A DNA stretch of 64,000 nucleotides from Amphiscolops sp. MND2022 (GCA_964187785.1 OZ076414.1:62001-126000), one strand, 5' to 3'. Shown: positions 30,025 through 60,891, numbered from the stretch's first letter. The notes: generated by a model not told the origin, from the letters alone. Numbers and translations are program-made.

Positions 30025-33000
30025 TTAGAAGCCACACATGGTGTTCATGTATTCGATTATCTCCGGGAGTTTGGGGTACTGCGGTATATCTGTATTGTAT
30101 TTCGCGACTTCACTCAAACTTGCACGGAACGATCTTCGGATCCCGTTACGCATGGAATTGGGTAGCATTGAGGAATAGCCTTCATGTATAGTCCAAATTT
30201 GCCAAAATATTTCTCCTTCTTCGTTAATGGGGTGTGGGGATGCTTGCTTGTTAAATTTCGCTTGTTTGCATCGACGGACAAACTCAGATACCATGGCAGC
30301 AGACAGGTGACAAAAATGGGGAAAACATTTGCAATATCTGACCTTCCTGATCCTCTCCTTCATGAATTCATTGAGTGCTGCAGCTGGAAAGAAAACTTTT
30401 TTAAATATTCATTGAACATTAAGTAATAAAAGAAAAATAATCAATACTGTCTTATGATCATAAGTTTGGAGCCACCTTTTTCAAAATTTTATTCAAACTT
30501 TTGCCAACATGAGATACTAACGGTATTCCTGAAAAGTCAAGAAGTTTGTCCCTACAGCCACACTGTTCGCTATTGTGGACACGAAGTGGAGCGTTCCTGC
30601 TGGGATTAAAACGCCCTGTCCGGCTTTCAAAGTGATTCTGTAGGCCTGAAGATCTCTTCTGCCTCCGAAGAACCTATTAACGGATGTCGTTGTCCTAGAT
30701 GACTGAAAGCTGGCCAGTCCTTCACCAAGCTTGCCGGTCTCGTTCACAAAAACGAACTCTTTTTCTCCGGCAAGGAGGACGTAGAACACAGAGGTTCCAC
30801 TGAAGTCCACGTGCCAGTCAGCGAAACACCCAGCTTGACTGAGGATGACGTAGTTTAGCTTCCAGACGCTGCTCTTATCTCTTGGGAGTCTCATTTGCAA
30901 TTTGTGTCCCAAGGAGATTTCTTTCACAAAGTTCGCAGGCTCGAACTGCAGACTGTTGCTTGTTGTTGCGTTCAGATCAATGATGTTCATTGGTCTGGAG
31001 AGATCGAACTTGAGGAAATAGGTTTTCAGAGGCATGGTCTCAATTTCGAACTCGTGCTGAAAAATTAACAAAGATGTAATAGTGAAATATAACTCTAACA
31101 AAAAAGGCTGGAGAATTATTGCCGATGATATTTCATCCTACATTGACTTGGAAACTTGTTGACAGTGATAATTCACGCTCAGTGTCTAAAGTGTATAAGG
31201 TTTTCTTATAGGCCAAAGTGCTTTGAAGAATGTGAATTACTGATACATTTTTCTCTATTTATACATGATAAATGTATCAAGTTTCTTTAGATGTGTCATT
31301 TTTCAGGATTTCTAATCAACCGCTACGTTGGTTAGGCATTCATTTGAGAAAATAATCAAAAGTTTCTTACTCCCTTTAGCCAACTGCAGTTTACTGTCAT
31401 TTTTGGATCTTCTTTCGCTAATACTGCTCTGAATAAACGTTCATCGGTAAGTTTGAGGTCTCCAGCTGCAAATTTGTGTGAGAAGCCCTTCAGTCTGAGA
31501 GCATCAACTATCAACATCGGCTTCTTCACAATTCCTTTTAGAGCCGTTTTCAAAAGCGCTGAGTTTTGATCAAAGAATTCGGCTTTGTATTGCAAGTAGT
31601 CTATGCCCTCTTTGCCCATCGGCAACCATTCCACCAGTTGGCGCAGTTCTGTGGCGTCGCTAAACGTTGGGTAGCCATCAGGGTCAATTGAATTGATCGC
31701 TGAAAACACACGAAATCAAAAGATAGGACACTACAAGAAATCAACTTTTCAATTGCCAATGTTTAATATTCAGTTGTTTAGGAAAATAAAGGCTTACATT
31801 TTTTAAAAATAATTGCCTATAAAATGTCCTTAAATGTTTATAGATTTTTTAAAAAACCACGTACGATCATAGCTGCAAGAAGATTGTGTTGGAAGAGTTC
31901 GTCTCGGGGTCGGCGATTTTCTTGGATTCCGCTTTTTTGCAGGAGTAATGGGCCCGCCGGTAGGAGGAACGGCACCTTAGCACAAAAACAAATGTCAACA
32001 CAGACTATCATTTCCAAAACAAAAATTTTAGGAAATATTTAAAATACCTAGTACATTTCCCCGGATATAAAGTGGAAAAATAATACGTACGTTTCTTTGG
32101 AGTCAGGGATTTTCGTGGACTCCGCTTCCTTGCTTTAGCCTTCTGAAAGAGGGGAGGTAGAGGAGGAAAGAGTGTAGGACGAGAAGACGGAGCAAGAGGA
32201 GGACCAGGTGTACGAAAAAGAGAGTCCAAACGAGACGGAGCAGGTGTAGGAGGGGGAGACGCCATAGAAGAAGAAGCACCAGGTGTAGGAGGAGGAGGAG
32301 GAGGAGGAGGAGGAGACGCCATACGAGAAGGACCAGGTGTTGGAGGCGGAGAATCCATACGAGAAGGACCAGGTGTAGGAGGAGGAGAAGCAGTACGAAG
32401 AAGATTAGTGGCCGTTAGCGGGGCTGAAAACAATTTTGATAAGAAAGGCAGTAAAAATCTTATTCAATTCAACATCAATAAGACTTCAAAAAACTAACAA
32501 ATCTAATAACTTTATTTTATATCCCTAATATTTTGAAGCTGAATAATAAATCCCATTTCAAACTAAATGTAAAAATTCAAAATTAAAGGTAAAAAGGTTT
32601 CTCGATTTTTGTTCATGCTGTACGCCAAAACTTGTTCTGGAAACTAAAAAAAAGCGAACAAGCACAAAAATTGAAACCAATCTTATGTTCATTTGAAGTC
32701 TCTTGCAAATAAACAAGCTCTTCTTTTCAAATCCGGAAAAGAATTTAGAACCTCCCAATTCAATTTGAAGGAAAAAAATTTCAGGTTTTTCTGTTTCTCT
32801 TTCATGCCGTATTCCAATAATTGTTCAGTAAAATCTAAAAAAAACGGACAAGCTAAACTTATTATCATTTGAAGTCTCCTGCAAGTAATCAAGCTATTTT
32901 TTGCTTAACTGAACTTAGAGTTGTTCTATTCATTGGTACTCTTATTGTTACAACATTTTTTGAAGTTTCATTTTTTTGTTTTTTGAAAACGTTTTCCCAA

Positions 33001-34440
33001 AAGACTCTTTCAAAGCATTAGCAATAAAAGTTTTGGTTTACCGCAATTATCTTTTGTTGAAGCTTCCCCAAAGGGACCGCATATGCTGGGATTCGCGGAC
33101 GTTCTTGTCATTTTTGTAGTCGTCATACTTGTTGTCGTTATCGGGGCTAAAAACATTTTCAAGAAAAGCATTAAATCATAATCAATACAACTTCTTTCGA
33201 ATTTCGAAAAACTAACACAATGTTGCCTTTCTCTTCTGGGGCGATGTTAGTTTCGTTGTTGTTTTTGAGGCTGAAAAAACATAAATCAAGCAAAACGTTG
33301 AAAACACTAATCAAATCATCATCAGTGAAACTTCGAAATACTAACAAGAGGTTGCTCTTCTCTTTCGAAGCTTCGGCATTCTCATGGTCGTTATCAGCGC
33401 TGAAAACACTATTGTCAAGAAAAGCATCTAAAACCTAATCAAAACCACATCACTGAAGCATCGAATTACTAACAAGAAGTTGCTCTTCTTTTGCGAGGCG
33501 TTGTTGTTCCCGTGGTCGTTAACGAACCTGAAAACAATTACGTAAAAAACGCATTGAACATCTTAATAAGTTGAACATCAGATAACCATCGAAGTACTAA
33601 CAAGATATTGCTCTCCTTCTTCCGGGCTTTGGCATTCTCGTGGTCGTTGTTGCCGCTGAAGACACTACTAACAAGAAAAGCAGTGAAAGTCCTATTTAAT
33701 TTCACATGCAGTCGGGAATTGAACTGAAAAACTTATTCAACACTAACGAGTGCCAGACATTCTTCCTAACGGTGGAGTTGGATCCAGCTCCTTTACAGAA
33801 TGAGAGCCAGTGTAGTCTCTTGTAATTTGATAATTCGTTTTACCCGTGGACGACCGAGCGGCTACGTTGCTTCCATAGTCAGCCCAGCTGGCACCTGCTT
33901 TATGTCCTTTTTTGTAGTGGTCCACATTCAGAGGAAGGAATGCCTCTTTCCTCATTAGAGTGTATTTGAAAACTTGTTTTTCATGCGTCAGCGCTTGGAC
34001 AACTTCTCGAGTTGCTGCCAAGTACTCATCAGCATAAGAGTCTGGGTCTTTGAAATCCCTTTCCTGAAAATCCTTGTACGTCTTGTTCATAATCGCCTGT
34101 GGATTCGAATCTTCGATTTGCTTTCGCTGCCATTTGCAGTCGTAGTTTAAAGCATGCTGAGCAGTTGCCGCGGGACAGGTAAACTCGAAAAATTTCATTT
34201 CACCATCTTTGTCCCTCTTGGCAGTGCCTTTCATGCCACAAAACATGCATGTTTTCCATTTGTTTTTCGTTATCAAATCTTCAGCTGCTTTCAAAACGCA
34301 ATGTGACACATTACCCCGGCGTCTGTGCTGCTTCAGGGTCTTGGCGTTTTTGAAACTCTCTCCACAATCTAAAAGCATCAACAATCGATTCATAAAATAC
34401 CTCACATGCGGCCCATCAAGAAGTCGTTGAAAAAAAATTG
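30025..34440 (-). CDS. Multi-exon JmjC histone-demethylase-like protein, KDM2/KDM7 type (element A)
   Basis: FADWHVDFSGTSVFYVLLAGEKEF...LIPAGTLHFVSTIANSVAVGTNFL has the H-x-D...H triad and conserved Lys. Exons inferred at ~34370-33748, five micro-exons, a Pro-rich exon ~32424-32090, ~31975-31865, ~31700-31370, ~31060-30523, ~30382-30025. 5' end unresolved. Confidence 0.85.
32560..32900 (-). repeat. Diverged inverted copies of the 184-bp repeat
   Basis: Reverse complement contains AAATTGAATTGGGAGGTTCTAAAT and GCAAGAGACTT...ATTTTTGTGCTT, matching the 34.6-35.3 kb units. Confidence 0.75.
33042..33655 (-). other. Tandem micro-exon array in the JmjC gene: four 54-nt exons and one 105-nt exon
   Basis: Exons 33602-33655, 33474-33527, 33346-33399, 33217-33270, each with a ..TTCAG acceptor and GTTAGT donor at ~128-bp period, plus 33042-33146. 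All are phase 1-1 and free of stops. Confidence 0.8.
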
Positions 34441-34554
34441 AATAATTGCCAATAATGGATTTGTTTCCCCACAAGAGACTAAAACTAAAGAATAAAAATT
34501 TATTGGATGCAAAATGGGAGGTCCAAATTACACCAGATTGGGTGTTCAAAACAA

Positions 34555-35300
34555 TGACAAGTACACATGCAGGAGGTTTCAATGAACAAATTTTGGCTTC
34601 GATTTTTGTTTTTTAATTTAATTTGAAATGGGAGGTTCTAAATACATCTAGGGATTCAAAAAATTGACATGCACACATGCAGGAGACTTTCACAGAACTT
34701 TATTTTGTCTTCGATTTTTGTGCTTTTCCGTAAAAAACTGTTTTGGCCACTTATTGATGTACGTCATAGAGAAAAACTGAAACACTGGGAGAATTTTTTA
34801 TTAAATCTGAAATGGGAGGTTCTAAATACATCTAGGGATTCAAAAAATTGACATGCACACATGCAGGAGACTTTCACAGAACTTTATTTTGTCTTCGATT
34901 TTTGTGCTTTTCCGTAAAAAACTGTTTTGGCCACTTATTAATGTACGTCATGGAGAAAAACTGAAACACTGGGAAAATTTTTTATTAAATCTGAAATGGG
35001 AGGTTCTAAATACATCTAGGGATTCAAAAAATTGACATGCACACATGCAGGAGACTTTCACAGAACTTTATTTTGTCTTCGATTTTTGTGCTTTTCCGTA
35101 AAAGCTTTTTTTTGGCCAGATATTGATGTACGTCATAGAGAAAAACTGAAACACTGGGAAAAATTTTTTATTAAATCTGAAATGGGAGGTTCTAAATTCA
35201 TCAAAGGATTCCAAAAATTGACATGTACACATGCCGGAGGCTTCATCGGAACATTATTTTGGCTTCGATTTTTGTGCTCTCCCGTATAAAACTTTTTTGG
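34555..35300 (+). repeat. 184-bp tandem repeat, ~3.5-4 copies
   Basis: Near-identical ORFs at 34669 and 34853 (offset 184); further copies at ~35030 and ~35216. Confidence 0.93.
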
Positions 35301-36260
35301 CCAGTTATTGGGGTATTGAATCTGTGGGTGGGGTTGTAACTAACAGAAAAGATCCAAAACTTCATGAAATAATTGTAGTATAAAAATTGTGGATATAAAG
35401 ATACAAGACTGAATAAGATTGAACCAAAAAATAGAAATTCTGTTAAAAGGGTTTGTTTACATTGTCGAAAAATTGTTATATTATTCAAGGTTTCTCGTTA
35501 CAACAGAAAAAATAGAAGGATCCAAGCTTTTGCGATAAGCAATAATTACATGCAAATTTGTGCTGAAAAGGCAGATTAGTTAGTTATACGCCTATTTGGT
35601 AAATAGACTCTGATTATCTCTAGGCGTGAAATAGACATAACTCAGTTCGTTGCACTATATTTCCTTGTAATATATAACTCAATTCATCGTAAAAAGATGT
35701 ACCATCTTTTCATCGTAGACTATTGCTTGATAGGTCATCTTTTACAAAGCCCTATACATATATATTGCAAAATTGCAGAGTTGTTTAACTTACCATCGCA
35801 TACAGGCATTATTAGTTAGGATACAGGATACAGCATACAGAATACATTGATACAGAATACAGGATTAGTTAGCTAAAGCCGAGAAGTAACAGATCAACAG
35901 GTTAAACAAGTTGATGTGCGAAGTAAAGTGAGATGATGCTTGTTTAAATTTTTGAAATTAATGAATGAAGGCAGCTGAATTTGAAACAATGAAATGTCAA
36001 TGTAAAATAAATCAGACGCACGCTCAATTTTGAAAAAAGTTCAAGTAAATTGAAGCCATTTCTTTAAAATAGTCGATGCCTTTTCTTAGCGGTCAGAAGA
36101 TCTCAGCATTTCAACCAATCAAATTTCAGCACTGTCGTTACTTGTGGTATTTTCAATGACAGTTGAATGCGCATTGCAAACTTTGGTAGGATCAATTGTG
36201 TTCTGTCGAGTACTGTTGAACAAAATTGATGCCTGTTCTACACTTTACACAATCATCTGG

Positions 36261-37200
36261 AATACTGTTTAAGGAAATCGATGCACACATTACTGTCGAA
36301 TACCGTTTAAGTAATTCAATGCACACATTAGTCTCGATTACTGTTTAAGAGAGTCGATGCACATATTAGTCTCGATTCCTATTTAGGAAAGTCGATGGAC
36401 ACATTAGTCTTAATACTGTTTAAGAATGTCGATGCACAAATTAGTCCTAATACTGTTTAAGAATGTCAATGCACACATTAGTCTCCAATACTGATTAAGA
36501 ATGTCGATGCGCACACATTAGTCCTAATACTGTTTAAGAAAGTCGATGCACACAAAAGTCTTATGACTGTTTAGGAAAGTCGATGCACACATTTGTCTTA
36601 AGACTGTTTAAGAAAGTCGATGCACACATTAGTCTTCAATACTGATTAAGAAAGTCGATGCACACATTAGTCTTAATACTGTTTGAGAAAGTCGATGCAC
36701 ACATTTGTCTCGATTACTATTTAAGAGAGTCGATGCACATATTAGTCTTCAATACTGTTTAGGAAAGTCGATGCACACATTAGTCTTAATACTGTTTACG
36801 AAAGTCGATGCACACATAAGTCTTACGACTGTTTAGGAAAGTCGATGCACACATAAGTCTTAAGACTGTTTAAGAAAGTCGATGCACACATAAGTCTTAA
36901 TACTGTTTAAGAAAGTCGATGCCCACATTAGTCTCGATTACTGTTTAAGGAAGTCGATGCACATATTAGTCTCGATTACGGTTTAGGAGAGTCGATGCAC
37001 ATATTAGTCTCGATTGCTATTTAAGGAAACCGATGCACACATTAGTTTTAATACTGTTTAAGAAATTCGATGCACTCATTAGTCTGCAATACTGTTCAAG
37101 GAAATCGATGCACACATAAGTCTCGACTACTGTTTAAGAGAGTCGATGCACATATTAGTCTCGATTACTATTTGAGAAAATCGATGGACACATAATTAGT
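36261..37200 (+). repeat. Minisatellite array 2, same 37-38-bp unit, ~25 more diverged units
   Basis: Same unit and same orientation as array 1. Confidence 0.95.
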
Positions 37201-37675
37201 CCCCCTGTTAAAGGAACCCAAATTGACACTTTCAAAACTCAAAAATTGAAATTCCTCAATTATTTCATCCCCACGAATAAATGTTTTTTTAGTCAGCCTA
37301 AAAAAGTCAGCAGATCAGTTTAAAAACGTTCTGTAATCAACTAAAGTAATATGTATGCGTAGTTGTAATCAATCAAGAGTCGACTCAATTTCAGGCGTGA
37401 TTACAGCCGATTGCGTGTAAAATGAGCCGACCAGTAATTGAGAGTTATAATCCTTGTAATTATCACACCAATCTTCAGCATTCTATCAAACACTCTTGCA
37501 ACGCAAATCAAGAGTCGACTCAAATTCAGGCGCTATTAGAGCCAATTACGTGTGAATTGAGCCTACTAGTTTTTTTGAGTGATAATCTTGTAAATATCAT
37601 TCCAATCTCCAGTTAACTGTCGAACACTTGCATTTCAAAACTGCTGCTTCGAGATAAAAAACTCTACATCCCGAC

Positions 37676-40393
37676 ATGAGCCAACAAACTCCTGTTCTGC
37701 AACTTGAGAACTTCGTTCCTTGTGTTCAATCAACGAATATGATAAGCACCCTTGAGTCTAATTTCGCTGAAAACGCAGAAATACTGGCTCCTGAAGTTGT
37801 AGATTCTCACTTACCATCAACGAATATCATGAGCACCACCGAGTCAAATTTTGCTAAAACCGCGGAAGAACTGGCTTCTGAGAATGGAGAGACTCAATTA
37901 CCAGCATTGAAAAAATTGAGCTCCGTCGACTCAAATTTTGCAAAAACTGCAGAGGAACAGGCTTCTGCGAATGGAGATCCTCAATTAACATCGTTGGTGC
38001 TTCCACAATCTTTATCTCAACCTATCTTCTCTCAGACTCCCGCTTTCAGCACTTCTGCTCACTTGCTGAGAGGGGTGACTGAAATTCTCCCAACGCCGCC
38101 TGCTACTCCTCGGGCTAATACACAGGCCGTAAATGGTTCTTTCGATTACCAGTTCATTCTTCCAACTTCGACGCCACTCAACCCAAGTACATCTCTTCCT
38201 CAGCTGACCGATTCAATGATAGGTGACTTTATTGCAACGCCGAGTGAGCTGACAATGAACGCCATCACTTCAACTCAATTCCGGTTCCAACCTGCTCCAG
38301 AGAGCAATCCGGTTCAACAAGTACTTTCCGAAGTTCGGAGGAAACGAAAAAATTCGTGCCAGAATGAGGAAGAAAACGACGAGTTAGCACGTGCGTCGAA
38401 ACGACAAAAAGTCAATGCAGAGAGTTTCGTTAGGAGCATCAATGTTGCTTATGTCCAGAATCGAGCGTTTCCAGCCGATGCATGCGAAGATCTCATGGGA
38501 GATTTAGTGGAACAGTTCGAGTTTTCATCTCGCCTCTCCTTCACTGACAGGAAGACGTTACACAATTTGATAATTGTTTACCTGATGGAGTTCGCAGAAC
38601 CAAGATGTTCAACAGCTGAACTAGAAACCTTCACAGTGAATTTGTTTGCGCAGACAATCCCGGAACTTCAAGCCAAGGCGGATACTCGAGGGACAGTGAC
38701 CTTAACCTGCGCGAACACGAGGACCCCTGGTGGTTTCAGGTGGGTGGAAAATTGTTCGAAATTAGTTGCATGGAACATTTCTGTGAAAGAAAAAGTGTTT
38801 ACGTGAAAAATGTCTTGGAATACTTCAGTGAAAACAGTTAGTTCAAAAAAATAAGCAGCGTCAAAATACTTCCCTAAATATTAGTTTCCTAGTCACAAAA
38901 TTCGTTTTACAGATCGCACACAATCTCTTGGATAGTGGGAAGGGGCCTGCAAGTCTATTACTCAGACGTACGTCCGAATTTCAAACCAAAGATTGGAGTA
39001 CCTCAGATGCAAACACGATTTCAGGGAAGTGAGAAGCTGGTTTGGACAGAGCCTTTCTTCTTCAATTCTACCGGAAACACCATTATCAACTTCCGAGATA
39101 AGTCAAAGAAAGAGATGGTCAAAGTGAGTCTAAGAATTCATGCAATATGAAAGGGACATATGAAATAGCCAAAAAATTGTTTTTGGAATTTGTTTGGATT
39201 GTTTATTGTTTTTAGAGAAATTTTAGACTAAATTTCAAAATGATGGAATAGTTTACGTTTCGTGGCAGTTTCGAACATCGTTCCTCTGTGTTCGAAAACT
39301 ATTATTCTACCATTTTCACCAAAACTCTTTCACGCAACATTTAGGGTCTTTGAATATTTGTTTAAGGAATTTGGTGACACTTGGAAGATAACAAAACATA
39401 ATATAATTTTGATCTATTTTCTCTACGTCTAATTTGTTCATTTCTTGCTTATTACAGCTGAGGCACAACTGCAGAGATGAGAATTTCGCCCTCAAACGTA
39501 TCGTCAGGCTGAAAACACCTTCAACTTACGAGCCGGAAGAACTCTTTCCGTCAGTGCAGCATGTCTCCAATCTGTTGTACAATTCAATTGGAAGAGCTGT
39601 CAACTTCGAGGATTTGACAAACCTTGTCACTAAACGATTGCAGACGCTAAGGACTGAACGCTTCTCCACGCAGGTTGAAGCCTTTGCCGATGAGTTTCGC
39701 ATCAAAGCAAATCCCGAAACGGACTATGCCAATTTCTTTGACCATGCATTCCGACAAGGGTGGAACACGTGCAAGGTTGGGTCATGGCAAGACGGGAAAA
39801 TCAAATCCAAGCTACATAAAACTCTATTGGACTACCGGGAAGGAAAAAGCGCCCAAAAACCTCGAGGTGCACCCTTCAATTCGAACTTGGAGTACAAGAG
39901 CAGTGTCTCAAACAACGAGGGTTGGCAATACGACTTTTTACACCGTGAGGACACACAGACGTGGGACGGGATCACCTGTGTCACATATCCTGACATGGGT
40001 CGTGGCGTGATGACACTGAAGCCGTTTAAAAAGGGCGATGTCATTTGCGACTATCATGGTTGTCTCGTTGACGAAAAGGATGCAGCCTCGTACGCTGCAA
40101 GAACAGGCCGTGACATGTCCTATATAATTGAAGTTTCAACAGACATTAGGCGTCTTGTCGATGCATCCAATGAGGACTGTCCTCACCATCCCCGAAATTT
40201 GTGCCTTGGAAGACTATGCAATCACTCAAGGCTCAGGAATAAGCAGTGCACAGCCCGCTTGGGGGAAGTAGTTTGCAGAAAACTCCCTCAAAAGCCTAGA
40301 AAAGTGGCACTGGTTGCACTCAGAGACCTTCCCCCTTTCACCCAGGTTCTGTTTGACTATGGCGATCCTGCAGCATGGAAAATGTTCAACTGA
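37676..40393 (+). CDS. Multi-exon SET-domain protein, SETD8/PR-Set7-like C-terminal SET (element A)
   Basis: GRGVMTLKPFKKGDVICDYHG...VDAS...CLGRLCNHS...ALRDLPPFTQVLFDYGD. Upstream exons (37676-~38780, ~38915-39130) are homologous to those of the element B SET gene. Confidence 0.88.
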
Positions 40394-41265
40394 TTGAACG
40401 AAAAGACACAACTGTTGGATGAAAAACATTGAACTTTTGTTGTATTTTGATTATTGTTGAAATCTGTTGTCTTTGCTCACTTGTTAAAAAATCTTTTGTC
40501 TTTGTTCTTTGGTCTTTTCAGTTGTCTAGGATTGTTCAATTGAATCAGGGACCTCTTTGATACCATGGCTCTAGAATTTAAATTGTATTCAAATATTTAA
40601 ATTTAAATAGAATTTAAAATCATCAACACCAATAAGAAGTAACTTTGATTTATCAAGATTTGAGAAGATCCCAACTCTCGCCGAGAAAATTGATGTTCAT
40701 GGCAATGGCCTTGTTCAAATTCGAAATTGTTTAAGATTTCCAATTCCCTGGCATTTACAATACGATTTCTTCAAGGTTTGCAGTTTATTGAATGAGATAT
40801 CAGCCGATTCGCCCAAATAAATGGTTCAAATACAGAAATGTTCAGGATTTGCACTTTATTGAATAAGATATCAACAGAGATTTGATTCAGTATATGTCAT
40901 TGGCTGTAATAATACCAGAATAATATTGCAATGGATACTATAATTCAAATCAGGAAATCTAAGAATACTCACAAGTTGTATAAGGAAGCCTATTTTCAAC
41001 AAGTTTTAAGCGTATTAGGATTTATAATACAAAGTATCAACATTACTTGTTTTGAGTACTAGGATTACTTATAACGTGGGGGGAAACATTTTGAGGCATT
41101 TGTATACGAATTATAAGGAATCTGATAATTATCAAATCTAAGGAAACTGAATACATTTGTAATGTATTAACAACTGAAAAATGTATCAGTAATACCAATA
41201 CTTCAATGCATATTGGCTTATAAGGAAAACTTAGGCATTTTAGACACGTATATTTACGCGCACTC

Positions 41266-41286
41266 TGAAAGTTGTGTCTTGTAATG
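41266..41286 (-). repeat. Right TIR of element A
   Basis: TGAAAGTTGTGTCTTGTAATG, reverse complement of 21918-21938. Confidence 0.96.
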
Positions 41287-43377: not shown

Positions 43378-43688
43378 TCCGAATTAGTTTTTTTGCTATA
43401 AATACTGGGTAATTTGTAGTCAAATAGATTGAGTTTGCATAGAGTTGAATTAAAATCAAACAGGCTGAAGTCATATGGAGGTGAACAAAATTTTAACAGG
43501 TGAAAACTCGAGTCTCAATTTGCGTTCAATCTGCCACATGTGCAAAAAGTGTTAATTACAACCCGCGACGAGTTTAGACTCGTATTCTCACTTTAAAGAC
43601 AGTGTGGAACTCAATTTTTGCTCATACACCTTAGTCCCATTTTAAATATTGACTAAACTTGCATTACATTTCAACCAACTCATCAACA

Positions 43689-46600
43689 ATGGAAATCTGG
43701 ATCGATAATTCAATTTCCATCAACAATATTCAATACATTGATTATAATCTAATCGATCAAATTTCTGGAGTCAATGAGGGTAACAAATTTCGAGAAGCTA
43801 CGAAATTAACGAATCATGTCCTTTGTGGAATATCATTGAAAGCTGAAGATTTCGTCATCAAGTGGAAAACAAATGGCCAGACAAGACACAAGATTTACAT
43901 CGAGGTATGTTTTTAATTTCAACACTTTCAATTTCAACTTCCATAGTAACATTTTAACAACCTATTTGAACTTCTAAAGTATCATTTTCAAAACCCCAGG
44001 AATATCCAATTGTTCTAAGCAGCTTTTCTGTACCGAAACCATTACAACTCCAGGAGCATGCATCTTTGTAGAATATTTCTAAACTAACAACCTAACGACT
44101 CCGGGAGCATAGCTTTTTCTAAAAATACATTTTTTGTCAGGCACACGTGATGAAATTGATTTTGTTGAGTGGTGGGAAAAACGTACCATGGACAAACGCT
44201 CGAAGGGAAATCTTAACCAAATTGATGGGCGAAGATCTGTTTCCCACTGGAAACCAAGTGGTCAAACCAACACTGCTGAGTCAAGTGGTACACAGAACAA
44301 TTGGTACCCAAACTGGAACCGATGAGTCACTTGAACCCGTGAACAATCAATCCGCAATGCAGACAATTCCACCAAAACCCGAAAACAACCAGTCTACGAA
44401 TTACGTAGTTCCGCGAGGGAAAAGAGTAGTTAGACTCCAAAAATCTCCAATCGCCTACTGGAAGTTCGTTTTGCGCCATGCAAAAAGGAACAAAGTCGAC
44501 TTCAACGCTCTAATAGACGTCATCCTTCACTTTTCCAGAACAAAACAGCCAGAGTACTTAAAATCTGTCATTAAAAAAATCTTCCCTAACTTTCAGTCGC
44601 GAGAAACACTAATCTCCAATGTTGCGGTTTCTCTCAAGTCAGGAAAAGCAGAAGACTTGTTATTTACTCTATCTTCAAATTTGAAAATCAATAAACTAGG
44701 GAAATTCCAAAATCTCGTACCATTATATCGTGCAGTCCAGAGATACCAGAGTCAGATCATGGAAAATTTTATCTCGGTGTGTCAGCCTGAAGCCACCTTT
44801 TCTGGTTTCCGTTGTGATCTGGTGTCATGTGTCAAATTTGCTGCATGGATTCTTTACGAGAGAGAAGAAATATCTGAGCTCAATATAGATTTGTGGGGTG
44901 ATGGTTGTGAAATTGGTGGCATTGATCACACAAGACTGTGTTTCAGAATTTTGCAAGACTTCTCTGATAAAATTACAGCGCAATCATCAAGTATAACATT
45001 TTGTTTCAGTGGTAAGTTGTGGTTGTTTTTACTGATTCTGTAATTTCCAATTGTCACTTAGTAAGGTAATTTTATTACTGTAAAGAGTCCACAAAAATAA
45101 ACGAACAATTTTAGTTTAAATTCGTGAACCACTACCTTCAATTTGCACTCTCGCATGTTTAATTATTCAATTATAGATTCTTCACACCATGTATAGTAAT
45201 TGGTCGCTCGATTCTACTGCTTAATTTACCGTGGTACCAAATCTAAAACAATCGAGGGGTGTCAAACGTCATTTGGAACATCAAACGTAATTTTTGTTTT
45301 GATTTGTTAAGCATTCCGAGGCAAGGACAGCAGGTTCGTACTGGAGCAAAATTTGGGACCAGAGATAGCTGGAAAACAAGAAACGGGGTGGCTGTACAAG
45401 CAAACAAAAGAGTTGAGTACACAAGGGGCGGTGGTCACCTATTCCGGCGACAATCCTTTTCTGTACCGTCTCATATTGGCTATAGACAGCGATGCATCGA
45501 ACCAATACCCATCAGACTTGGCGCTGTATGTGGGATCTGAAAAGTATCTTCCAACAGATGTGGATGACTATACTGGTATGCGTCACAATCTGAAAGCTCC
45601 GTTCAGAGAAGAAATCCCACAAATCTCCCTTGTGTACCTTGAGGATATAAGATGTGTCATGCCAGATGTAACGCACATGATCACAAGGTGCGTAGAGAGT
45701 GATCTCCGCAAAGCTGCACAGAAAATAGTGAACGAAAAACCAGTGTACAAAGTGTCCCTACAGCGATTGGAAGAAAACTGTACTCGAAGGGCATTGAAAA
45801 AACCGAAATTTCAGTTTGACCTGCAAGTGAAAGGATCTGAATTGAAAAAAGGAATCGTTGGACCGGTATCGCTATCCGGAACATCAGCGCTAGTAGCTAT
45901 CGCTGATAGAGAAGAATTTGAACAAGACGTTCCGAATCTTTTTGAAAATGTGTGGGGAAATGAAATCCTTTTTGAGACGAGAGACAACACAAACAAACAA
46001 AATGCGCCAGCTGTCAGCAATGCCTTTTCAGTTCTGAAATCCATGCACCCACACATAGCAAAATCCGACACATTCACAACAAACGACTGTGCAAATCTCT
46101 TGCAGCATAGTTTGAATAAATGCACTATTATTTTGCGGGCATCCAAACACGGTCTAAACACGGAGCAATTCAAGTTTTGGTCTGAGTCATATTATCAATC
46201 ATCGTTGCTTCTCTTTTCCGGGAAAGACGGACTCACCCCCTACAAACTGAAAATGTTGCTAATCCCACAGATAATGGACGCAGGGTTTGTTCGGAGTCCA
46301 TGGCATCACATGTGTGAAGCGATGGAGAAGTCGAACCATCATGCTCACAAGGACTTCCAAACCAAAACAATGAGAGGCGGAGGAAAATTGTACAACCCTG
46401 ATCCTTTGTTCTATGAGGGTTTCTTTTCCTACTGCCATTACCTCGACATAGTTTCAAAACACAAAAGAATACCTGTGAGCGATACATTTGACAAGCTTCA
46501 GAAACAATTCGATCAGAAAACAACTTATTCCGAAATATGCAAAAATGTAGTCAAGCCTGCAATAATAGAAATAGGTGCCACTCGAGATTCAAGTAGGCTG

Positions 46601-47196
46601 CTGAGTGGACTTCGTTTTCACGTGGTTGGGCACTTTACTGGAACGACTGGAAAAGCTGTGGAGGATACAATTACTCGTTTGGGGGGGAAGTACTGAGTAA
46701 AGACAAAGCTCTTGGACTATCGAAGCGCCATTCCTCAACCCCAAATTGTTTTGTAGTAGTGAAAAATGACACTGAATTGCTTAAGGCAACGAAGAGTGAA
46801 ATCAGCTCCGCTTCTGGATCAGACAGCGACACGTGTTCATCGAACACTCAACGAAAAACAGCTCCAGCGAAAATAATGAAAAAGGCAACAAATCAAGGAT
46901 CAGTCAGGATATGCAAAGAATTTGCCGCCACCGATTTCAAGTTTTTGAGTGTAGCATACATTCAAGATGTTGAGAAAAAAGGCTGTGTTTTGGACCCTTC
47001 CGAATACTTGTTTGATAAAGGTGCGATTGAGCGAGCATGTGTCAAAGACCAACGTCCATTATTTGAGAGACAAAGAAATCCCGAAATATCAGACCTTGAT
47101 TACAGATCATTGATTACTTCATTGAAAATGTCAAGAAAGAGAGCAAGAGAAGAAGGACAACCAGACGATAAAATTGCTAAACTTTTCAGCAATTAG
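43689..47196 (+). CDS. DDE transposase (CMC/Transib/RAG1-like) with C-terminal BRCT domain (element B)
   Basis: Exons 43689-43904, 44141-45011, 45312-47196. Motifs DLWGDG, SGDNPF, PDVTH, CEAMEKSN, KTMRGGGK; BRCT-like LLSGLRFHVVG...ITRLGG...FLSVAYIQD. One -1 frameshift at the G7 run 46681-46687. Confidence 0.88.
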
Positions 47197-47868
47197 GCAA
47201 AAAATGTCGGGGAACTTTGATTTGTTTGAATATGGATAACAAGTATTTTACTTCAAAAAGAAATTTTTTTACGATTTTATCGTTTTCAAAAACCACAGCT
47301 TGCGTTTTAAAAGCGCACTAGAATTGAGAAAGTAACTGTTAAACATGGTTTGCAGAATCAATATATCAATATTAAACCATTTTTAGTTATTGTTTAAATG
47401 TATTGTACACTGATTTTAAACAAGCGTTGAATTTTGTGGATTCTTCAGATCGCAATAGCTCAGCTCGCGCTCAAAATGCGCTGTAGAATTGAGAAACTAT
47501 TATGCCTGGTTTGAAGAATCTATATATCAATGTTAAACCATTCCTAGTTATAATTTGAAGGTAGTATATTGCATTGTTTTTGAGCAACTGTTCAAGTCAG
47601 TTCAGCCAATTCTCAGCTTTGAATATATTACGTAACGACTCCGCGAGCAGATACAGTTCACAAAAACTTTTCTATACCAACTAGGTAAAAACTCCAGGAT
47701 CTTATTATCTTTTAAAAACGAATCAATTGGTAAACGTTGAATTTTAACCGAACATTTATTCCGAATACTCGGAGAGCAATCAAAATAGTATGGAACGCAT
47801 GGATCGAACAATCATTTAATTGAAAAGTTTTTCAAAATTCTGTTTTTTTTTTCAAACGGGAGGTAAGT

Positions 47869-50296
47869 TCATGGATCGAACAATCTCCTCGCTTCTTCAT
47901 CTCGATAGTCGAAGCGAAGTTCCTGGAATGCCGCAATGTCAGTCTTAGCTACCATGACCAGGACGTCTTTGTTCTGTGCTATGTTTACTAGCACCGGTTT
48001 CACATTCGCTTCCTTGGACGACTTGTGATTGATTAATCTCCCAAGGCACCGGTTGTTAGGATGTTCGTCGCAGATTTCCTTGGAAGCGTCGACTAAGTGT
48101 TTTTGCGAAATTCGGAAGAGATACTCGCTCTGGTTGCCGGGTATGTCAAGGTACTCTTCGCAGCTCATTCCTTTGATCTCTTCTCCGTGATAGTCGACAA
48201 GGATCTCTCCTTTTTCGACATTGGTTGTGGTTACTACTCCGCGACCCAAACCTTTCACGTGTACGTCACAGATTGATGGCCATTGCTGTGACTTAATTCG
48301 TCTGCCAAGAGCCCTCTTGAAGTTATATGTTTGTTCGTTATGGGGTGGCAGAAACAAGACATCGTGGCGAAGGGAAACTGTTGGAGTCTGTAGTGCCTCT
48401 GGATTCAATCGATCTGTGACAATCTTGAACGTCTGAAATTATTAGAACAACATAAAATTGTTATTCAAATGTTCTTTTATTCACTTCGCTTTAGCTATTA
48501 TATTGCTGGTAATTTTTTTTTTGTGCAGTGTAACTGAATCTTTCACATGCAAGGTAGCCGTAACTTTACTGAAGAAAAAAATCATTCCGTCAAATGCTGC
48601 TAGTCAAAAAAGATACATTTTTCAGGTCTTCTTCAGTGCTCCATGAGTTTTTGGCGTAAAAGTCTATGAGTCGCTGCCTGGTGGGTTCCGTGTGGTTGCG
48701 TTTGCTGCCACAAAACGTTATAAATTCTTTCGCTCGCAGAACTTGGCGGGCATATCGCTGCGCATTGAGGCGTCTGACAACGTAAGGACCCAGCTGTCGC
48801 TCAGTGACGTTGTAAATTGCAGCCCAGGCTTTGTCAACACCTGCCCAGATCTCAGCAATGGCCTGCGTTTTCTTCATGAATCCGGCATTGCTGGATGTAG
48901 GCAGAGGAAGCCTTTCGTTGACACACCCCAGCAGTATATCATCCACTGCCTCCCGGGCACTCTTTTCCATCTACAACAGAGTGAGAACGCAATTGTAAAC
49001 CAACACAACTGCGGAAAAATTTGAATTGTGTGATGATAATCTGACAAAAGAGATGTTACATGAGAGAACGAAAATGATACTTCTAAAAAATCCCGCACTC
49101 GCTACTTGAAACAACAAATTTTACAACTTTGAAGCCCTCAATGCTCCTAATGGTTCAATTTTTACCTTGTCCATGAACTCCTAAGCAATAGATCTGGGGT
49201 TGAAGTTCGCATTCCCTTTTGAAGTTACAAAGAAATGCTCCGTAGCAACCTCTTCGACGCCATCATCGTCCCGTTGAAATGCTCTCGTCACAGTACTTGG
49301 CGATTTCCGTTGGAAAGTCGGCCTCACATTGAGGTGATACACCCGCATCGCGTTCACCACCCATCGTTCGATACGGTGTTCCACTCGAATAGTGTTTCCT
49401 AAAACGAACTCAGTTCATAGTTTTAGATTTGGGCATTTATTTTGCCTTATATTCAAATTTATGTTCTCATATCAACAATTTATACGTCCGCAATCTATCT
49501 TGTTTAAACCGTGAAAATATAAAATTTCTTCGTGCCATATGCTACTAATTTGATATTTGTACAGAACATCCTACGTCGCTTTCAAGTTTTAGAAAAAAAG
49601 GTCCAGTATATTTACCCAAAGATGGTTCGAGAATCAATTTGCAATGGTCACAGTCGCTCAAGTCATCAAATTGTATTATAACTTGCGCGACGGCATGCAC
49701 TGTCACAGCCAAAATGCTTTTCGTCATCACTGTCACTGGCTCGGCATACATGTAGAGGTACGTGATAATGCCGTGGAAAAGGGATAATTGTTGCTGGTAC
49801 GTCAGCGCTCCACATTTGTCGTAAGTTTCTATAACCCCCTCTAACGTCTTTTTAATTTGGGGTCCGAATTTTTCTGACCACTGCAGTCGTGGCAATTTTG
49901 GTTCTGACTCTAAACACGTCTTAGCAGGAAAGTCGAGGATGCGCTTTAAGGATGTGCTTGTAGAAAGTGCACTCGTTTCGTATTGAGTTTTTTTGACTTG
50001 ATCGCTCGAGTGTGTAGAACTTGATGTGCTGCTTTGAGTGAAATACGGGGGAGGGGTGTTTTCGCTTGTTGCCAATATTTGAGAAAAGTTGGGAGGACAA
50101 GTGATCGTAGGGGCGATATAGGACTCGTGAAATGAGAAGTTACTTTGACTTCGATGAATCGACGCAGGAGTGCTATGAAAATGAATTTCATTAGGGGTTG
50201 TGGAGGTTGTAAAGGAGTTAGATAAGGACTGGACTGAGTATATTGCGTGAAGTCGCTATTACAAATTGTGATGTTTCTCAGAGTTTGTTCAGACAT
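47869..50296 (-). CDS. Multi-exon SET-domain protein, SETD8-like (element B)
   Basis: GRGVVTTTNVEKGEILVDYHG...VDAS...CLGRLINH...AKTDIAAFQELRFDYRD. Upstream exons 48590-48970, 49181-49384, 49545-50075 share YLYMYAEP/YLMEFAEP and VRP..F..TE.FF..S.GN with element A. 5' end uncertain. Confidence 0.85.
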
Positions 50297-50759
50297 TATT
50301 ATGAAATTTTAGTTTACTAAGATATCAGAGGGGAAAGCAAAAAGTTTGAAAATTGAGCTGCTGGGTACTGCAAGAGTAATCGGTCTAGAATAATGAGGAA
50401 TTTTTTTTGGATTGTTTGAGCTGCTGGTTATTGCGAGAGTAATCAGTCTAAATGATGGAAGAATTGATTTTGAATTGTTTGAGCTGCTGGTTATTGCGAG
50501 AGTAATCGGTCTAAATGATGGAAGAACTGATTTTGAATTGTGTATTTTTAGTTGTTAAATCAATTGGAAAAAACCGAACTCATTTTTGACGCATATTAAA
50601 CTGCCCATGATGCTGCATTTATTAGAAACGTTTATCTAATTTCTGAATTACATTCAGTCTGTCAAAAAGTACTCAAGTGAAAACTGAGTGCAAAATTAAT
50701 CGATCGCATTTGGTAGCATTTAAAAATTTGATGTTAAGAAGCTGATTATTTTCAATTAA

Positions 50760-53700: not shown

Positions 53701-53900
53701 TTGATCTGAAAAAAGATCAGTTGATTGTTGGTACTTCTCAATAAGATAATAAATGCGATATAATTGGATAATAAAACATGCGAGAGTGTAAATCGAGAGT
53801 ATTGGTCCACGAATTCAAAACAAATTTGTTCGTTCATTTTTGTGGATTCTTCACAACAATAGGACTGCTATGAACATACCTTTTAAAACCTCATGCAAAA
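50760..53900. repeat. Mosaic of internal duplications in element B
   Basis: 50.9-51.75 kb resembles 52.2-53.3 kb; recurrent TTTTGTGGATTCTTCACAACA and CCACTGCATCCCTTTTTGATG blocks. Confidence 0.85.
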
Positions 53901-54711
53901 ATGGTTTGCAATTTTGATTCAATTGAAAAAAACATGAAAAAATACATTGCAATTTTGTAACTAATGAAAAAATACAATGATCTTTGTAATCGCGTTGCCT
54001 AAGCTCGGTAAAAAGAATTTTCGAGTGGTAACTGTATCTTCAATTATCTTGGAACATATGGTACTGTTCGATCTCTTAGTTGAACAATTTGGGACCATGT
54101 GTTCAATTCCCCCCCAGGTACACCTTGCTGCGAATTCCCCCCCCCCCCGAACACGAAAACACATTTTGTTCTTGAATAAAAATATCTCACTAGTAAGAGA
54201 ATATTATATGAAAGTATATACTCAGAGGGTTGCCTCTACAACTGTTTGGACACTTCAGGTAAAAAAATTACCAAAATGTTTTGATATTATTATCCAAAAT
54301 AGCAGAAATTTGCGTTTTAAACAAACTAAAATTGTATAAAAAAGCCCCGAATTCAGCCCAAATTTTGTCCGCTATAAAATCAAATTAGCAATTTTTAAAT
54401 GACAGTCAATGTAATGGATAGGATTATGTCGACATCATTTATTATATTGGACCAAAATTTCAACGCAAACTATGTCGACATAATGGTTTTTGAACCTTCT
54501 GTCTTATTTCCTCCCCCCCGCCGCAGTCTGAGGAGGGGGGAATTGAACACATGGTCCACAATTTGTTCAACTAGGCAGGTATCTTGTCAACCTATTGTTG
54601 ATCATTGTTCTTTTAACCGCTACCACATTCCCCCGCCGGCAATTGACGGTTGGGAATTTCCATTAATATACTAATACAAGTAGTAAAAAGAACAACTAAA
54701 TTTGTTTACGT

Positions 54712-55326
54712 TTATTTGGTACAGTTGAAGTCATGCGCTGATGGAGCAATGGCAATGACGTCCCTGTACTTCATGAAATCAGACTGCAGCCAAGGCCTGA
54801 CTTCGAAAGAGCGCGTGGTGAACTTTTTTTCTGTAAGGCTCCATTCTGAAACAGTAACATGCAGTCGTAACATCTTGGAGCAAGTGTCTACGGGAGGGGA
54901 ACCATTGGATGACTTGGAAATTCGGGAGCATACAAATTGAAAGAAGATTTTTTTGAATGCAGATTTTGGACAACGATTACTTTGAAGGTGCAACTTCCTT
55001 TGAATGCAAAGGTACCATTTTATTCAAAACCAATTACCTCTTCGGTGGGTTCGGAGCGGCTGCGGAGTGGCTGCAATCTCTCGAGTGACCAAGGTGAGAC
55101 TGTCTACGGCCTCGCAGAGATCTTCTTCATCATACGGTGGCTGGTTGCATGGGGGGATGGCTGGTTGGAAATTGGAACCGACCATGATCATCGGTTTTCG
55201 ATTCAAGACGGGGGCCAAGTTCGTTTTCTTCAGGGAGACGGTCAAGAAACTTCCTCCTGAATATCGTTCCTTGCTTGGCTCCTCGTCGAACACAGCCATG
55301 TTGAAGGCAGGGAACACCTGTAACAA
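54712..55326 (-). CDS. Unassigned coding segments downstream of the JmjC exons (C-terminal exons or a separate gene)
   Basis: Two GC-richer open frames (55024-55326, 54712-54993) in an AT-rich background; no motif recognised. Confidence 0.4.
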
Positions 55327-55425
55327 ACACTTTTATCTTAACAATTTTATTGGGACCTAAATACTATTGAGATACTGTCAGGATACAAATCTACCCCTCG
55401 TAAAATTTATCAATTTTGGGATTGC

Positions 55426-58414
55426 TCACAACAACAAAACAACGAGCATGTTTGTTAGACTACTTACTTCTGTAGTGGAGGCTTCTCCGTTCTTCATGTG
55501 TTCTGCTACTTTTTGGAAGAGGTGCCTGTACTCATCACCCAAGTAGTTGGGGCGCAGCTTGCGGTAGTTGTACAGCAACACACTCCACACTGTCGTCAAA
55601 TCGGGATATCTGGAATACATAAATATTATACTCAAGGTAACAATTTACAAGAGAACAATTGGTGGAGGGGTATTAGATGTGACACTTATAATGTTCTATT
55701 GAGTATGCATTAATATTTCCCAACTTCAAACTTATGTTCCCTGACAAATTGCTCCCGGAGTCGTTACAAACTTTCGTGGATGATTGTTTTGAATTGTTCC
55801 CCAAAGATGCTCCCGGATTCGTTAAAAATATTGGCAAAGGTTGTGTCTTCTATAACATTTTGAATTGATTGCCGAACATGCTCCCGGAGTCGTTACAAAA
55901 TAAAAAGAGGAGGTGTTTCTGCATTGTTTAATGTCCTTCACTTTCTCGTTTCAGCTATATAGATGGTAGAGGAAGTATAGTGATGTTGTATATTTTCTAT
56001 ATAAAAAACTTTACCGTGTATCTTCTTTAATGTCGAAGTGGGCATCCACAATTAGTCTACTGTGCCCAAAACTCAGGAAATTAGCACCGAGTGCAATTGA
56101 GTCGCCGTGGGTAAGGACACAGTGAATCCACTTTGAAGGCAGAACAATGGCATCACCTGCCCTTGCATGGATCCTGTGACAGCCCCCCTCTAACGTCTGC
56201 AGGTCTCCAAATGATGTTGTTCTAAATATCACACATAAAAAACACAAATGAGGGGTTTTGATAGAATTCAGTTGAGTGTTTATTTTCAGCATTACCCGAA
56301 AAATGACAATTTTTTTCCAAAGAGATTGTCTACTTTCTATACACTAAACGAACATAGACTTTAGGGAAATGACGTGAAGGAGGATGTTTATACTTACAGG
56401 CTGCGAGGGTCTTTCTCACTGTACTGCTGAAAGAGTTGCAAGTTCTTCTTTGTTGGCTCAACAAGCCAGAAGATTTTCTCACCGAGCAGTACCACGTAGA
56501 AAACTGACGTGCTTGCGAAATCAATGTGCCACGGGGTGACACATTTGTCGTTGGATAGCAGCAGGTAGTTCCACGTGCTCTCCGTCAAGTACCCATCGCT
56601 CTGAGAACCTGCCAGATTTGACTCAACATAGCGGTCGATTGCGGCATTTCGTACCGCAGTAGGTGGTGAAAACATCTAAAAACGAAGGTACTTAAACTAC
56701 TTAAAATGTGAAAGTTGCTTTCTTATATCTTAAGAAGAAAATTTCGCAGAGTCGTTTACATATGGGAACTGGGCACCTATAAAATTTGTCAGTGACTTTC
56801 AAAGGTGTTTAAAAGTTATTTTTTCTTCACTTTACTGTTTAACTAGTTTCGATTTTATCTAAATATCTCATTACCGCATGTTGAAGGGTGGCATCTAGCA
56901 CGTTGACAGGAAAGAGTCCTTCACGGGCTGCTTCTGGGCCGGAACGCTGTTCCGCCAGATACTCCTCTCTGGTCAAACTTCGTATCTGCAAATACATTTT
57001 GTACTCTAGTTCAAATGATTTTTTGTTGAATGTGAAAACGCAGTAGAATTGAGACAATAGTGACTAAATGTTGCGAAGAATCTACCACTGGATAATAAAA
57101 CATTGAAAATTTAATTTGATGGTAGTTGTCCATGATATTTCACAACGATACAAATGAAAACTTATGCGGATTCTTCACAGCGATAAATATACGCGTTTGT
57201 GTGCGTGCTCTTAAATCCAGGAAAGTTTTTCTGTAAACCAACCGCACTTTATAGTTTAAAATCTCACCTCGTTCACTCTGGCCGACTTTGCAGAAATGGG
57301 GACATCCGGGTTGGCAACATGCTGCAACAAATGTCCTGCTAGAGGCAGAAACTGAGTTGCCTTGTCCTCCGGAACATGGGGTATGACGAGGCCTTCTGCG
57401 TTGTCCCTTGCACCTCTCCACAAGATGGGGAAACCATGGGCCAAATAACAGAAGACTTTCTTCGTCTGATCTTCCACGGCCCCATTCCAAACAACGCACT
57501 TTGGGACGGTGCTCTGACGCGTCCCCTCGATGTGCTCGTAGTACCTAAGAACAAAAAACAACTACTTTTTTTCCTAGTACAATTAAAGGTCTTTATTATT
57601 CTGGCACGGATTAAATATTCATCTTTATCTACTTATAGGTATGAAAAGGAATTTGACATCTGTTGTATTCTGGTAAGGTCAGCTATAGTTTTAACAAAAA
57701 AAGTATTCTATTTGACTTTCATTTCTTTCAAACTTGCAATAACATATTATGCCAAATAATACTTGAGTACTCTATGTATTCTGTAGCATAGCTATCAACT
57801 CGAATTTCCCTCACCTGTAAGTGCCGTCCTTAGCCGATTTTCTGGGGAACCGGTAGAAGTTCATGTCCTTGAACCTGTGATTCGGCACTCGCTCCAGATG
57901 GCGCAGCAGATTGCTCCGGGAAGAAACCTGCTGTTCACAGCCCTCACAGCTTGTTGGCTTGAGTTTCCCCGTTACAGTCTCTGGAATAAAAGAAAAACTT
58001 CAAAACAACTTCAAAACATGGGCGTTACGTTTCTATACCGCAAGCACAACTATCAAACTATCATTAGTTTCTCAAAAGTGTAAAAGATACTTGTAACCAT
58101 ATATAGCAAGACCGTTTCTCTAGGCAGGTTTGTAATGACATCGGTAACTTACTGTATTTCTTCAGAGCTGGGGAAAGACCTTGAGCCAATTCACTCGCCC
58201 TCTTGGCACAGCTCTGGGTCTGCTGATGACGTTTGAGGGCATCTTTTGTCGACACAGGTTGTAGACACAGGTTGCAAGTGAAGCTACCACTTCCGCTGGC
58301 CACCTCCGGCACCGGCTTGGATCCTTCGCATTTTTGGACGTGTCTGTTGTAATTGAACAACCTGGTCGACTCATAAGGGCACTTCGGACACTTCATCTGG
58401 GGTTTTGGCGGCAT
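55426..58414 (-). CDS. Multi-exon zinc-finger + JmjC protein, KDM2/KDM7 type (element B)
   Basis: ATG 58414; exon 1 has two C2H2/C2HC-like fingers (CPKC...H, CNLC...H). GFPILWRG...GLVIP (57256-57561); FPVNVLDA (56839-57057); TPWHIDFASTSVFYVVLLGEKIFWLVEPT (56394-56675); VLPSKWIHCVLTHGDSIALGANFL (56011-56220). Confidence 0.87.
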
Positions 58415-60860: not shown

Positions 60861-60891
60861 GACTACAACAGATTTGTTGCAGTCACCATTT

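Follow-up and report, generated by a model that had tools for sequence, protein, structure and literature searches.

A zinc-finger JmjC gene of the KDM2/KDM7 class is very probably a long-standing core gene of a large cut-and-paste transposon family in Amphiscolops

The window analysed here is a 64,000-nt stretch of eukaryotic DNA from Amphiscolops sp. MND2022 (GCA_964187785.1 OZ076414.1:62001-126000; G+C about 38%). It holds two DNA transposons, elements A and B, one nested in the other, and each carries a gene for a predicted protein in which N-terminal C2H2 zinc fingers precede a JmjC domain. Element A (21918-41286, 19.4 kb) is bounded by the inverted ends CATTACAAGACACAACTTTCA at 21918-21938 and 41266-41286, which form a perfect 21-bp inverted repeat (CATTAC...GTAATG) with AT on either side, or a 23-nt inverted match when AT is counted. 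The flanking AT is a 2-bp target duplication, with both ends seen for the window copy alone. For two other copies, of which one flank each is seen, the adjoining dinucleotide is AT in L010 and TT in L011, and because of this difference the two bases adjoining element A are assigned to the flank and not to the element. Element B (about 21870-59971, about 18.7 kb when the nested element A is subtracted) has 19-nt inverted ends (GTAACGACTCCA[T/G]GAGTGT) and a 17-bp subterminal motif that runs forward on the left and reverse on the right, and element A is nested in its left subterminal region.

The window's own locus is present at 100% identity in a public assembly (L012), so its remaining contigs are taken to represent further loci of this genome. 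Two of them, L010 and L011, contain complete copies of element A that are 99.7% identical to the window copy over 19.19 kb; the similarity stops exactly at the A terminus, the sequence beyond it is different at each of the three loci, and both copies have an intact JmjC gene (873 aa). When the open reading frames (ORFs) of the core JmjC exon are clustered at an identity of at least 90%, they comprise 11 sequence variants with about 21 contig occurrences, and cluster sizes for the element genes range from 11 to at least 22. Older relatives of element A that have decayed are found in L001, L002, and L004 (75-87% nucleotide identity), and L006 is a B-like copy in the same genome (94-99% identical). 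These data show that element A is young and multi-copy. They also bear out the first-pass annotation, made from the sequence alone, in describing the genes as transposon-borne: the inverted ends enclose the genes, which travel with the element, as seen in three copies of 99.7% identity in differing surroundings. The CA...TG inverted ends, the 2-bp duplication, and the multiple copies of element A are features of the CACTA/Mirage/Chapaev/Transib-RAG1 group of cut-and-paste transposons, in which target duplications measure 2-5 bp. L002 (1-20531) also contains an A-like element, 78-87% identical to A, inside a B-like transposase gene that is 91.5% identical to window positions 45398-47294, with the junction at about 18661-18663. 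Nesting of an A-type element in a B-type one is seen at two separate positions and may reflect a target preference.

The JmjC motifs of the window are carried by short minus-strand ORFs in two sets, and the gene models that join them were assembled by hand. JmjC gene A is predicted to occupy 30025-35809 on the minus strand, with 12 exons encoding 874 aa, GT-AG borders at all introns, and an open frame throughout (exons 1-6, 35809-35794, 34368-33748, 33655-33602, 33527-33474, 33399-33346, and 33270-33217; exons 7-12, 33146-33042, 32423-32091, 31975-31865, 31699-31371, 31056-30522, and 30383-30025). Its JmjC region covers three exons and follows four 54-nt phase-1 micro-exons and a proline-rich exon. 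The first exon has only 16 nt (35794-35809), encodes MPVCD, lies 1.4 kb upstream, and is kept in L001. This short exon supplies the first Cys of the zinc finger, and the remainder of the finger together with a second Cys/His cluster is encoded by the next exon (33748-34368, minus). The spliced finger scores 25.5 bits against a Pfam C2H2 cut-off of 25.2, which it meets only when the 16-nt exon is joined. A start at ATG 34393 was rejected, and the upstream exon was adopted, because this ATG is absent in L001 and L002 whereas the acceptor at 34369-34370 is conserved, and because the upstream exon completes the finger.

Repeats accompany several parts of gene A. The micro-exons (33217-33655, minus) encode basic, Thr-rich repeats, each with the unusual donor GTTAGT; they sit in a 128-bp tandem repeat, and their number seemingly differs between subfamilies. 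Intron 1 is filled at 34610-35310 by 3.8 copies of a 184-bp tandem repeat, which is more diverged in L001 and L002 and at which contigs of public sequencing runs contain copy-number joints. Elsewhere in intron 1, at position 35765, two bases are missing in all four public runs relative to the window.

JmjC gene B (55426-58414, minus) has at least seven exons (58414-58153, 57980-57815, 57544-57268, 56985-56875, 56675-56398, 56221-56015, and 55609 to about 55426), GT-AG introns, and an open frame of about 494 aa, with a provisional 3' end. It encodes three C2H2-type fingers ahead of the JmjC region; the Pfam C2H2 match in exon 1 has an E value of 1.7e-7, and the third, weaker finger lies in exon 2. 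Pfam detects no PHD or CXXC domain in A or B, and the N-terminal exons give C2H2 fingers only, while a PHD + JmjC + JHD arrangement occurs in four of nine sampled non-transposon relatives. KDM7, PHF8, and PHF2 have a PHD finger as their accessory domain, and KDM2 combines CXXC, PHD, and F-box/LRR. The first-pass annotation had proposed N-terminal zinc fingers in the place of PHD or CXXC, which these matches support in both genes, whereas its gene boundaries had to be moved: gene A begins at 35809 and not at about 34582, and gene B, whose lower end had been set at 56011, extends to at least about 55426. The gene models show the combination of zinc fingers and JmjC for A and B only, and the predicted N-terminal module varies across lineages. 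In a further lineage, L007, the region upstream of the JmjC domain (1-1175) encodes a Cys-rich stretch (CPLC...CCYCG...CMTC...CTFCGHNH) in place of C2H2 fingers, possibly as the outcome of a swap of N-terminal modules between lineages.

The JmjC domain of copy A is matched by Pfam at 30517-31101 (E 1.8e-6, exceeding the gathering score), and both halves of the copy B domain are matched as well (56394-56675 and 56011-56292). Against the Protein Data Bank (PDB), the core exon of copy A finds ceKDM7A with an E value of 1.1e-16, and the others are solely PHF8, KDM7A, KDM2A, and PHF2. The core exons of copy B give the identical set of matches, with E values of 2.2e-10 for PHF8 and 5e-7 for ceKDM7A. 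An AlphaFold2 model of the gene A core exon, built with 61 aligned relatives, reaches a mean predicted local distance difference test (pLDDT) score of 85. Its top 30 structural matches all belong to the ceKDM7A/PHF8/KDM2A/PHF2 group (E 1e-11 to 3e-9; template modelling score 0.70-0.78), and the next family, JMJD6, follows at 4e-7, which is 100-fold weaker. Sequence and fold together confirm that the JmjC domains of A and B are of the KDM2/KDM7 (JHDM1/PHF8) structural class, the class to which the first-pass annotation had assigned them.

In PHF8, the iron ligands are His247-x-Asp249...His319; Tyr257, Asn189, Lys264, and Thr244 touch the distal carboxylate of 2-oxoglutarate (2OG), and Asn333 is in the second sphere (PMC9516565). 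The catalytic core exon of gene A (30522-31056, minus) encodes the corresponding series of N, H-x-D, Y, K, distal H, and N, and its translation reads ...CFADWHVDFSGTSVFYVLLAGEKEF...IPAGTLHFV...GTNFL, with key codons at 30811-30813 (His), 30805-30807 (Asp), 30760-30762 (Lys), and 30586-30588 (distal His). The core exons of gene B (56398-56675 and 56015-56221, minus) translate as ...VTPWHIDFASTSVFYVVLLGEKIF... and ...LPSKWIHCVLT...GANFL, with key codons at 56526-56528 (His), 56520-56522 (Asp), 56475-56477 (Lys), and 56122-56124 (distal His). We aligned A and B with seven other transposon-type JmjC proteins and seven host-type proteins. The equivalents of PHF8 H247, D249, Y257, K264, and H319 are kept in every aligned sequence, the Asn at the N333 position is kept in all except P0038, and the Asn at the N189 position is present in both A and B, the two sequences checked. 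Copy B keeps all the PHF8 contacts to 2OG (N189, T244, Y257, and K264) as well as N333, and copy A keeps all but Thr244. The earlier description of the catalytic motifs as intact holds for the HxD...H triad and the 2OG contacts of the two copies, apart from the Ala that replaces Thr244 in A.

The same elements encode a transposase and a SET-domain protein. The transposase gene of A (24537-28253, plus), which is convergent with the JmjC gene, encodes a C-terminal BRCT domain (BRCT_2, E 2.7e-4), and that of B (44147-47196, plus) has a weak BRCT match. The two transposases align in three blocks that cover about 790 aa at 33-36% identity, with 36% over the main block of 498 aa. Homologues of the A transposase fall into multi-copy clusters of 22 to 128 members, with 22 in the transposase cluster counted alongside that of the core JmjC exon. 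Apart from BRCT, searches with the transposase sequence give no match in Pfam and none in the PDB. The model of the A transposase is confident at residues 150-355 only. With this model, Foldseek gives no significant match (best E 0.3), though its top seven rows are RAG1; VIA-align gives Z scores of 7-10.1 to 18 entries of RAG1, amphioxus RAGL (BbRAGL), and HzTransib, and the next, unrelated match has a Z score of 5.3. The model comparison thus gives moderate support for a RAG1/Transib-like enzyme. The SET-domain exon of A (39434-40393, plus; Pfam SET E 3.7e-11) is KMT5A/SETD8-like, with KMT5A/SETD8 as its only PDB matches (E 2.5e-10), and the SET-domain exon of B (47869-48408, minus; Pfam SET E 1.4e-12) is 33% identical to it. 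A further gene of element A (23187-24272, minus) lies head-to-head with the transposase gene and is found in L005 and L007 at 25-30% identity. It has no Pfam or PDB match, Atlas Tudor/Agenet features score 0.80-0.83 only, and its identity as a Tudor gene is a weak lead.

Elements A and B are unalignable at the DNA level, and their proteins are 38% (JmjC), 36% (transposase), and 33% (SET) identical, with different gene orders. Two further lineages, L003/L005 and L007, come from other assemblies and have a similar gene set at about 25-40% identity. L003/L005 contains transposase pieces, the JmjC gene, the Tudor-like gene, and SET. The gene order of L007 is that of A, with the Tudor-like gene head-to-head with the transposase and the transposase convergent on the JmjC gene; its JmjC protein is part of a 78-member cluster, and a SET gene was not found on the 8.6-kb L007 contig. 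Four lineages at about 35% protein identity retain the JmjC gene beside this transposase. Between A and L001/L002, the ratio of non-synonymous to synonymous substitution rates (dN/dS) of the JmjC gene is 0.22 at a synonymous divergence (dS) of 0.65, and between the dead copies L001 and L002 it is 0.93. A low ratio between A and the older copies and a high one between dead copies are expected if the active lineage is selected while inserted copies decay. In the same comparison, dN/dS is 0.23-0.34 for the transposase, 0.36 for SET, and 0.30-0.44 for the Tudor-like gene, and these values show that purifying selection on the JmjC gene is as strong as that on the transposase. The comparison of gene B with L006 is uninformative for dN/dS, with a dS of just 0.017.

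We also placed the JmjC proteins in a tree of 61 JmjC regions, computed under a site-heterogeneous model and with no outgroup. The tree separates the proteins of A, B, L005, and L007, along with five short proteins of the JmjC-only type, from the 50 remaining JmjC proteins of the class with 100% ultrafast bootstrap and 99% Shimodaira-Hasegawa-like approximate likelihood ratio test (SH-aLRT) support, and A and B lie outside the KDM7 and KDM2 clades. A small transposase tree is in no conflict with the JmjC tree. A comparison with the KDM2/KDM7 proteins of the host was replaced by one with the best 150 database relatives, among which the closest non-transposon proteins are 30-41% identical. Separately, P0012 (536 aa, from a Logan contig of about 5 kb) has a JmjC domain, a JHD, and, after the JmjC region, a weak match to a MafB19-like deaminase (E 2.5e-4).

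The first-pass annotation had itself named recent neutral capture of a host gene as one finding that would overturn it. DNA transposons of the CACTA/Mutator type frequently acquire host gene fragments, and the best named relatives of A and B are host-type PHD-JmjC proteins, as would be expected if the JmjC genes were recent captures of host KDM7/KDM2, or host genes between repeats, with no function in the transposon. This explanation is contradicted because the nearest non-transposon relatives are so distant, dN/dS is 0.22 between subfamilies against about 0.9 between dead copies, the four diverged lineages keep JmjC beside the transposase, and the transposon proteins form a separate group at 100/99; the position of the genes within inverted ends that move with them also speaks against it. 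We consider it highly improbable. With high confidence, we conclude instead that the JmjC gene is a long-standing core gene of a family of cut-and-paste transposons of about 19 kb, which also encode a BRCT-fused, probably RAG1/Transib-like transposase and a KMT5A-like SET protein, and that both window loci are intact genes with introns for a C2H2-JmjC protein of the KDM2/KDM7 class.

KDM2 acts on H3K36me2, and KDM7A/PHF8 act on H3K9me1/2, H3K27me2, and H4K20me1. From its sequence, the C2H2-JmjC protein is predicted to be an active Fe(II)/2OG-dependent lysine demethylase. The zinc fingers would stand in for the H3K4me3-reading PHD of KDM7/PHF8 and recruit the protein to chromatin, most likely that of the element itself. 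There, the protein would strip mono- and di-methyl marks like the targets of KDM7/PHF8 (H3K9me2, H3K27me2, and H4K20me1), and the removal of these marks would keep the element transcribable and excisable. The transposon would in this way bring its own eraser, together with its own writer, the SET gene, to govern its chromatin state. The simplest reading, already proposed in the first-pass annotation, would be that the JmjC protein clears repressive methyl marks off the copies of its own element, for which VANC and the transposons that carry TET/JBP genes offer precedents. We lean slightly toward the full account, in which a selected core gene encodes a demethylase acting on the element's chromatin, and regard anti-silencing as the specific role of the gene as a tentative proposal, plausible rather than probable.

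Several observations weigh against this account. Copy A has Ala (FADWH) where PHF8 has the 2OG-contacting Thr244, the sole departure among these residues in the window; the position is Thr in copy B and L002 and Ala in L001. Pfam does not detect a JHD after the JmjC domain in the last exons of A and B, where a short stretch (FPHFCHLSAAMVSEFV in A and YPDLTTVWSVLLYNY in B) resembles, by eye, the start of the JHD helix region. A pattern search finds no C2H2 pattern upstream of JmjC in L005 and L007. Searches of public sequencing runs for the two genes recover DNA runs only, and the contigs of four such runs at gene A are genomic, without intron-skipping joints. The transposon JmjC group joins very long branches (2 to 2.8 changes per site), and long-branch attraction is a caveat to its split from the other proteins. 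Gene A is bracketed by two co-oriented arrays of a 38-bp minisatellite unit (28481-29847 on its 3' side and 36256-37193 on its 5' side), both present in L010 and L011; the 3' array is undetected in the older L001, whose corresponding interval is about 1 kb shorter, and is probably not an essential binding site. Finally, the KMT5A-like writer of the same element would produce H4K20me1, a mark that PHF8 demethylates, so that plain erasure of repressive marks is incomplete as an explanation.

Some of these observations would also fit a JmjC protein retained for a role other than histone demethylation, either as a hydroxylase of a non-histone protein such as the transposase or a host silencing factor, or as a weak or inactive scaffold or methyl-lysine binder. 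PHF2, which lacks the distal His and without activation is weakly active or inactive, is among the structural matches of the JmjC core; the missing Thr244-equivalent contact in copy A, the long branches, and the failure to detect a JHD point the same way. However, every transposon lineage retains the full HxD...H triad together with the Lys and Tyr contacts, the Asn contact is present in A and B, and a dN/dS of 0.22 across the catalytic exons fits a conserved enzyme, and we judge such a role quite unlikely.

The KMT5A-like SET gene and the BRCT-fused transposase also make a module for H4K20 methylation and break repair conceivable. The JmjC protein would then belong to a transposition/break-repair module that sets the methyl state of H4K20, and perhaps of H3K36/H3K9, at the donor or target site, and thereby channels the repair of breaks made by the RAG1-like transposase or chooses the target chromatin. 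H4K20 methylation, tandem Tudor domains, and BRCT domains converge in break repair of the 53BP1 type, and the genes of the element recall this combination: SET matches KMT5A/SETD8, the H4K20me1 writer, alone; JmjC is nearest to KDM7/PHF8; and the transposase has a BRCT domain and a predicted RAG1-like fold. JmjC, transposase, and the Tudor-like gene occur together in A, L005, and L007, and SET occurs in A, B, and L005. Evidence for a Tudor domain is weak, though, and we know of no precedent for a transposon that steers repair by histone methylation. The present evidence is equally compatible with such a module and with anti-silencing, and we rate the module as unlikely. A bolder form of the idea, which we consider doubtful, is that giant RAG1/Transib-like transposons carry a core histone-methylation kit (a KDM7-like eraser, a KMT5A-like writer, BRCT, and perhaps a Tudor reader) that predates the divergence to about 35% identity and is used at transposition breaks to steer repair or target choice. 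If this were true, the family would be the first known case of a transposon that provides its own setting of chromatin and repair, and a counterpart to the way in which the vertebrate RAG recombinase is coupled to chromatin.

The preferred account, a selected core gene for a demethylase of the element's chromatin, can be set beside known systems. The closest proteins are those of the KDM7 group (ceKDM7A/JMJD-1.2, PHF8, and KDM7A), followed by KDM2A/JHDM1A and PHF2, which share the JmjC core fold with A and B at 29-33% identity, as well as the HxD...H residues that bind Fe(II) and, at the 2OG site, the Asn, Tyr, Lys, and Asn positions. Unlike them, A and B are encoded by transposons and form a separate, fast-evolving group; they have N-terminal C2H2 fingers without PHD, CXXC, or F-box and without a JHD detected by Pfam, and copy A has Ala for Thr244.

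Among mobile elements, fungal DNA transposons (KDZ, Plavaka, ESTA, and others) encode TET/JBP dioxygenases (PMC12730594). They resemble the elements described here in carrying an Fe(II)/2OG dioxygenase eraser, here a predicted one, as an extra gene beside the transposase, and some of the carriers also belong to the CACTA/Mirage/Chapaev/Transib-RAG1 transposase group (PMC12730594), but their target is 5-methylcytosine in DNA, their hosts are fungi, and no SET or BRCT partners are reported for them. VANC of the Arabidopsis VANDAL (MuDR) elements is an anti-silencing protein for which targeting to its own repeats has been shown (cited in PMC12730594). Like the JmjC protein, it is an element-encoded factor proposed to undo the silencing of its own copies; as described in that citing source, VANC is of no known enzyme class and has no JmjC domain, whereas own-copy targeting is only proposed for A and B. 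Oomycete HarbingerS and MuDR transposons carry SET genes (Repbase Reports cited in PMC12730594), a histone methyltransferase cargo as found here, but as cited there they have the writer only, with no demethylase reported, and their transposases are of different superfamilies. Transib and RAGL elements share with element A the CA...TG termini and a short target duplication, and the predicted fold of the A transposase matches theirs with moderate support (RAG1, BbRAGL, and HzTransib at Z 7-10.1). Element A differs from them in that sequence similarity is undetectable, its duplication is 2 bp, the elements here span about 19 kb with at least four genes, and the transposase is fused to BRCT; no RAG2-like gene is seen here.

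Our literature search found no paper on a transposon-encoded JmjC protein, nor did we come across any account of a transposon in which selection maintains a histone lysine demethylase among the core genes, paired with SET on a RAG1/Transib-like element. The known epigenetic cargo of transposons consists of TET/JBP (DNA methylation, in fungi), SET (a histone writer, in oomycetes), and the non-enzymatic VANC. If the JmjC protein is active on the chromatin of the element, it would provide a direct and testable case of a mobile element that erases the silencing marks of its host, and the young, intact copies of the family are potential experimental material. A RAG1-like transposase with a BRCT domain also bears on how such transposases became coupled to chromatin.

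Outside the two elements, direct repeats at 9785-10728 and 61755-63498, which are 84-86% identical and 52 kb apart, enclose a reverse-transcriptase ORF and a gag-like ORF with CCHC zinc knuckles (18250-19380 and 60798-61319, both minus). Elements B and A may lie inside an old retroelement of the long terminal repeat (LTR) type. A reconstruction of the empty site, in which the flanks of element B were joined within the presumed old retroelement, gave no convincing continuous ORF and was set aside. Positions 1-22000 of the window show a strong strand asymmetry, with a G+C skew of +0.12 to +0.49 and a negative A-T skew, and this asymmetry stops at the left border of element B.

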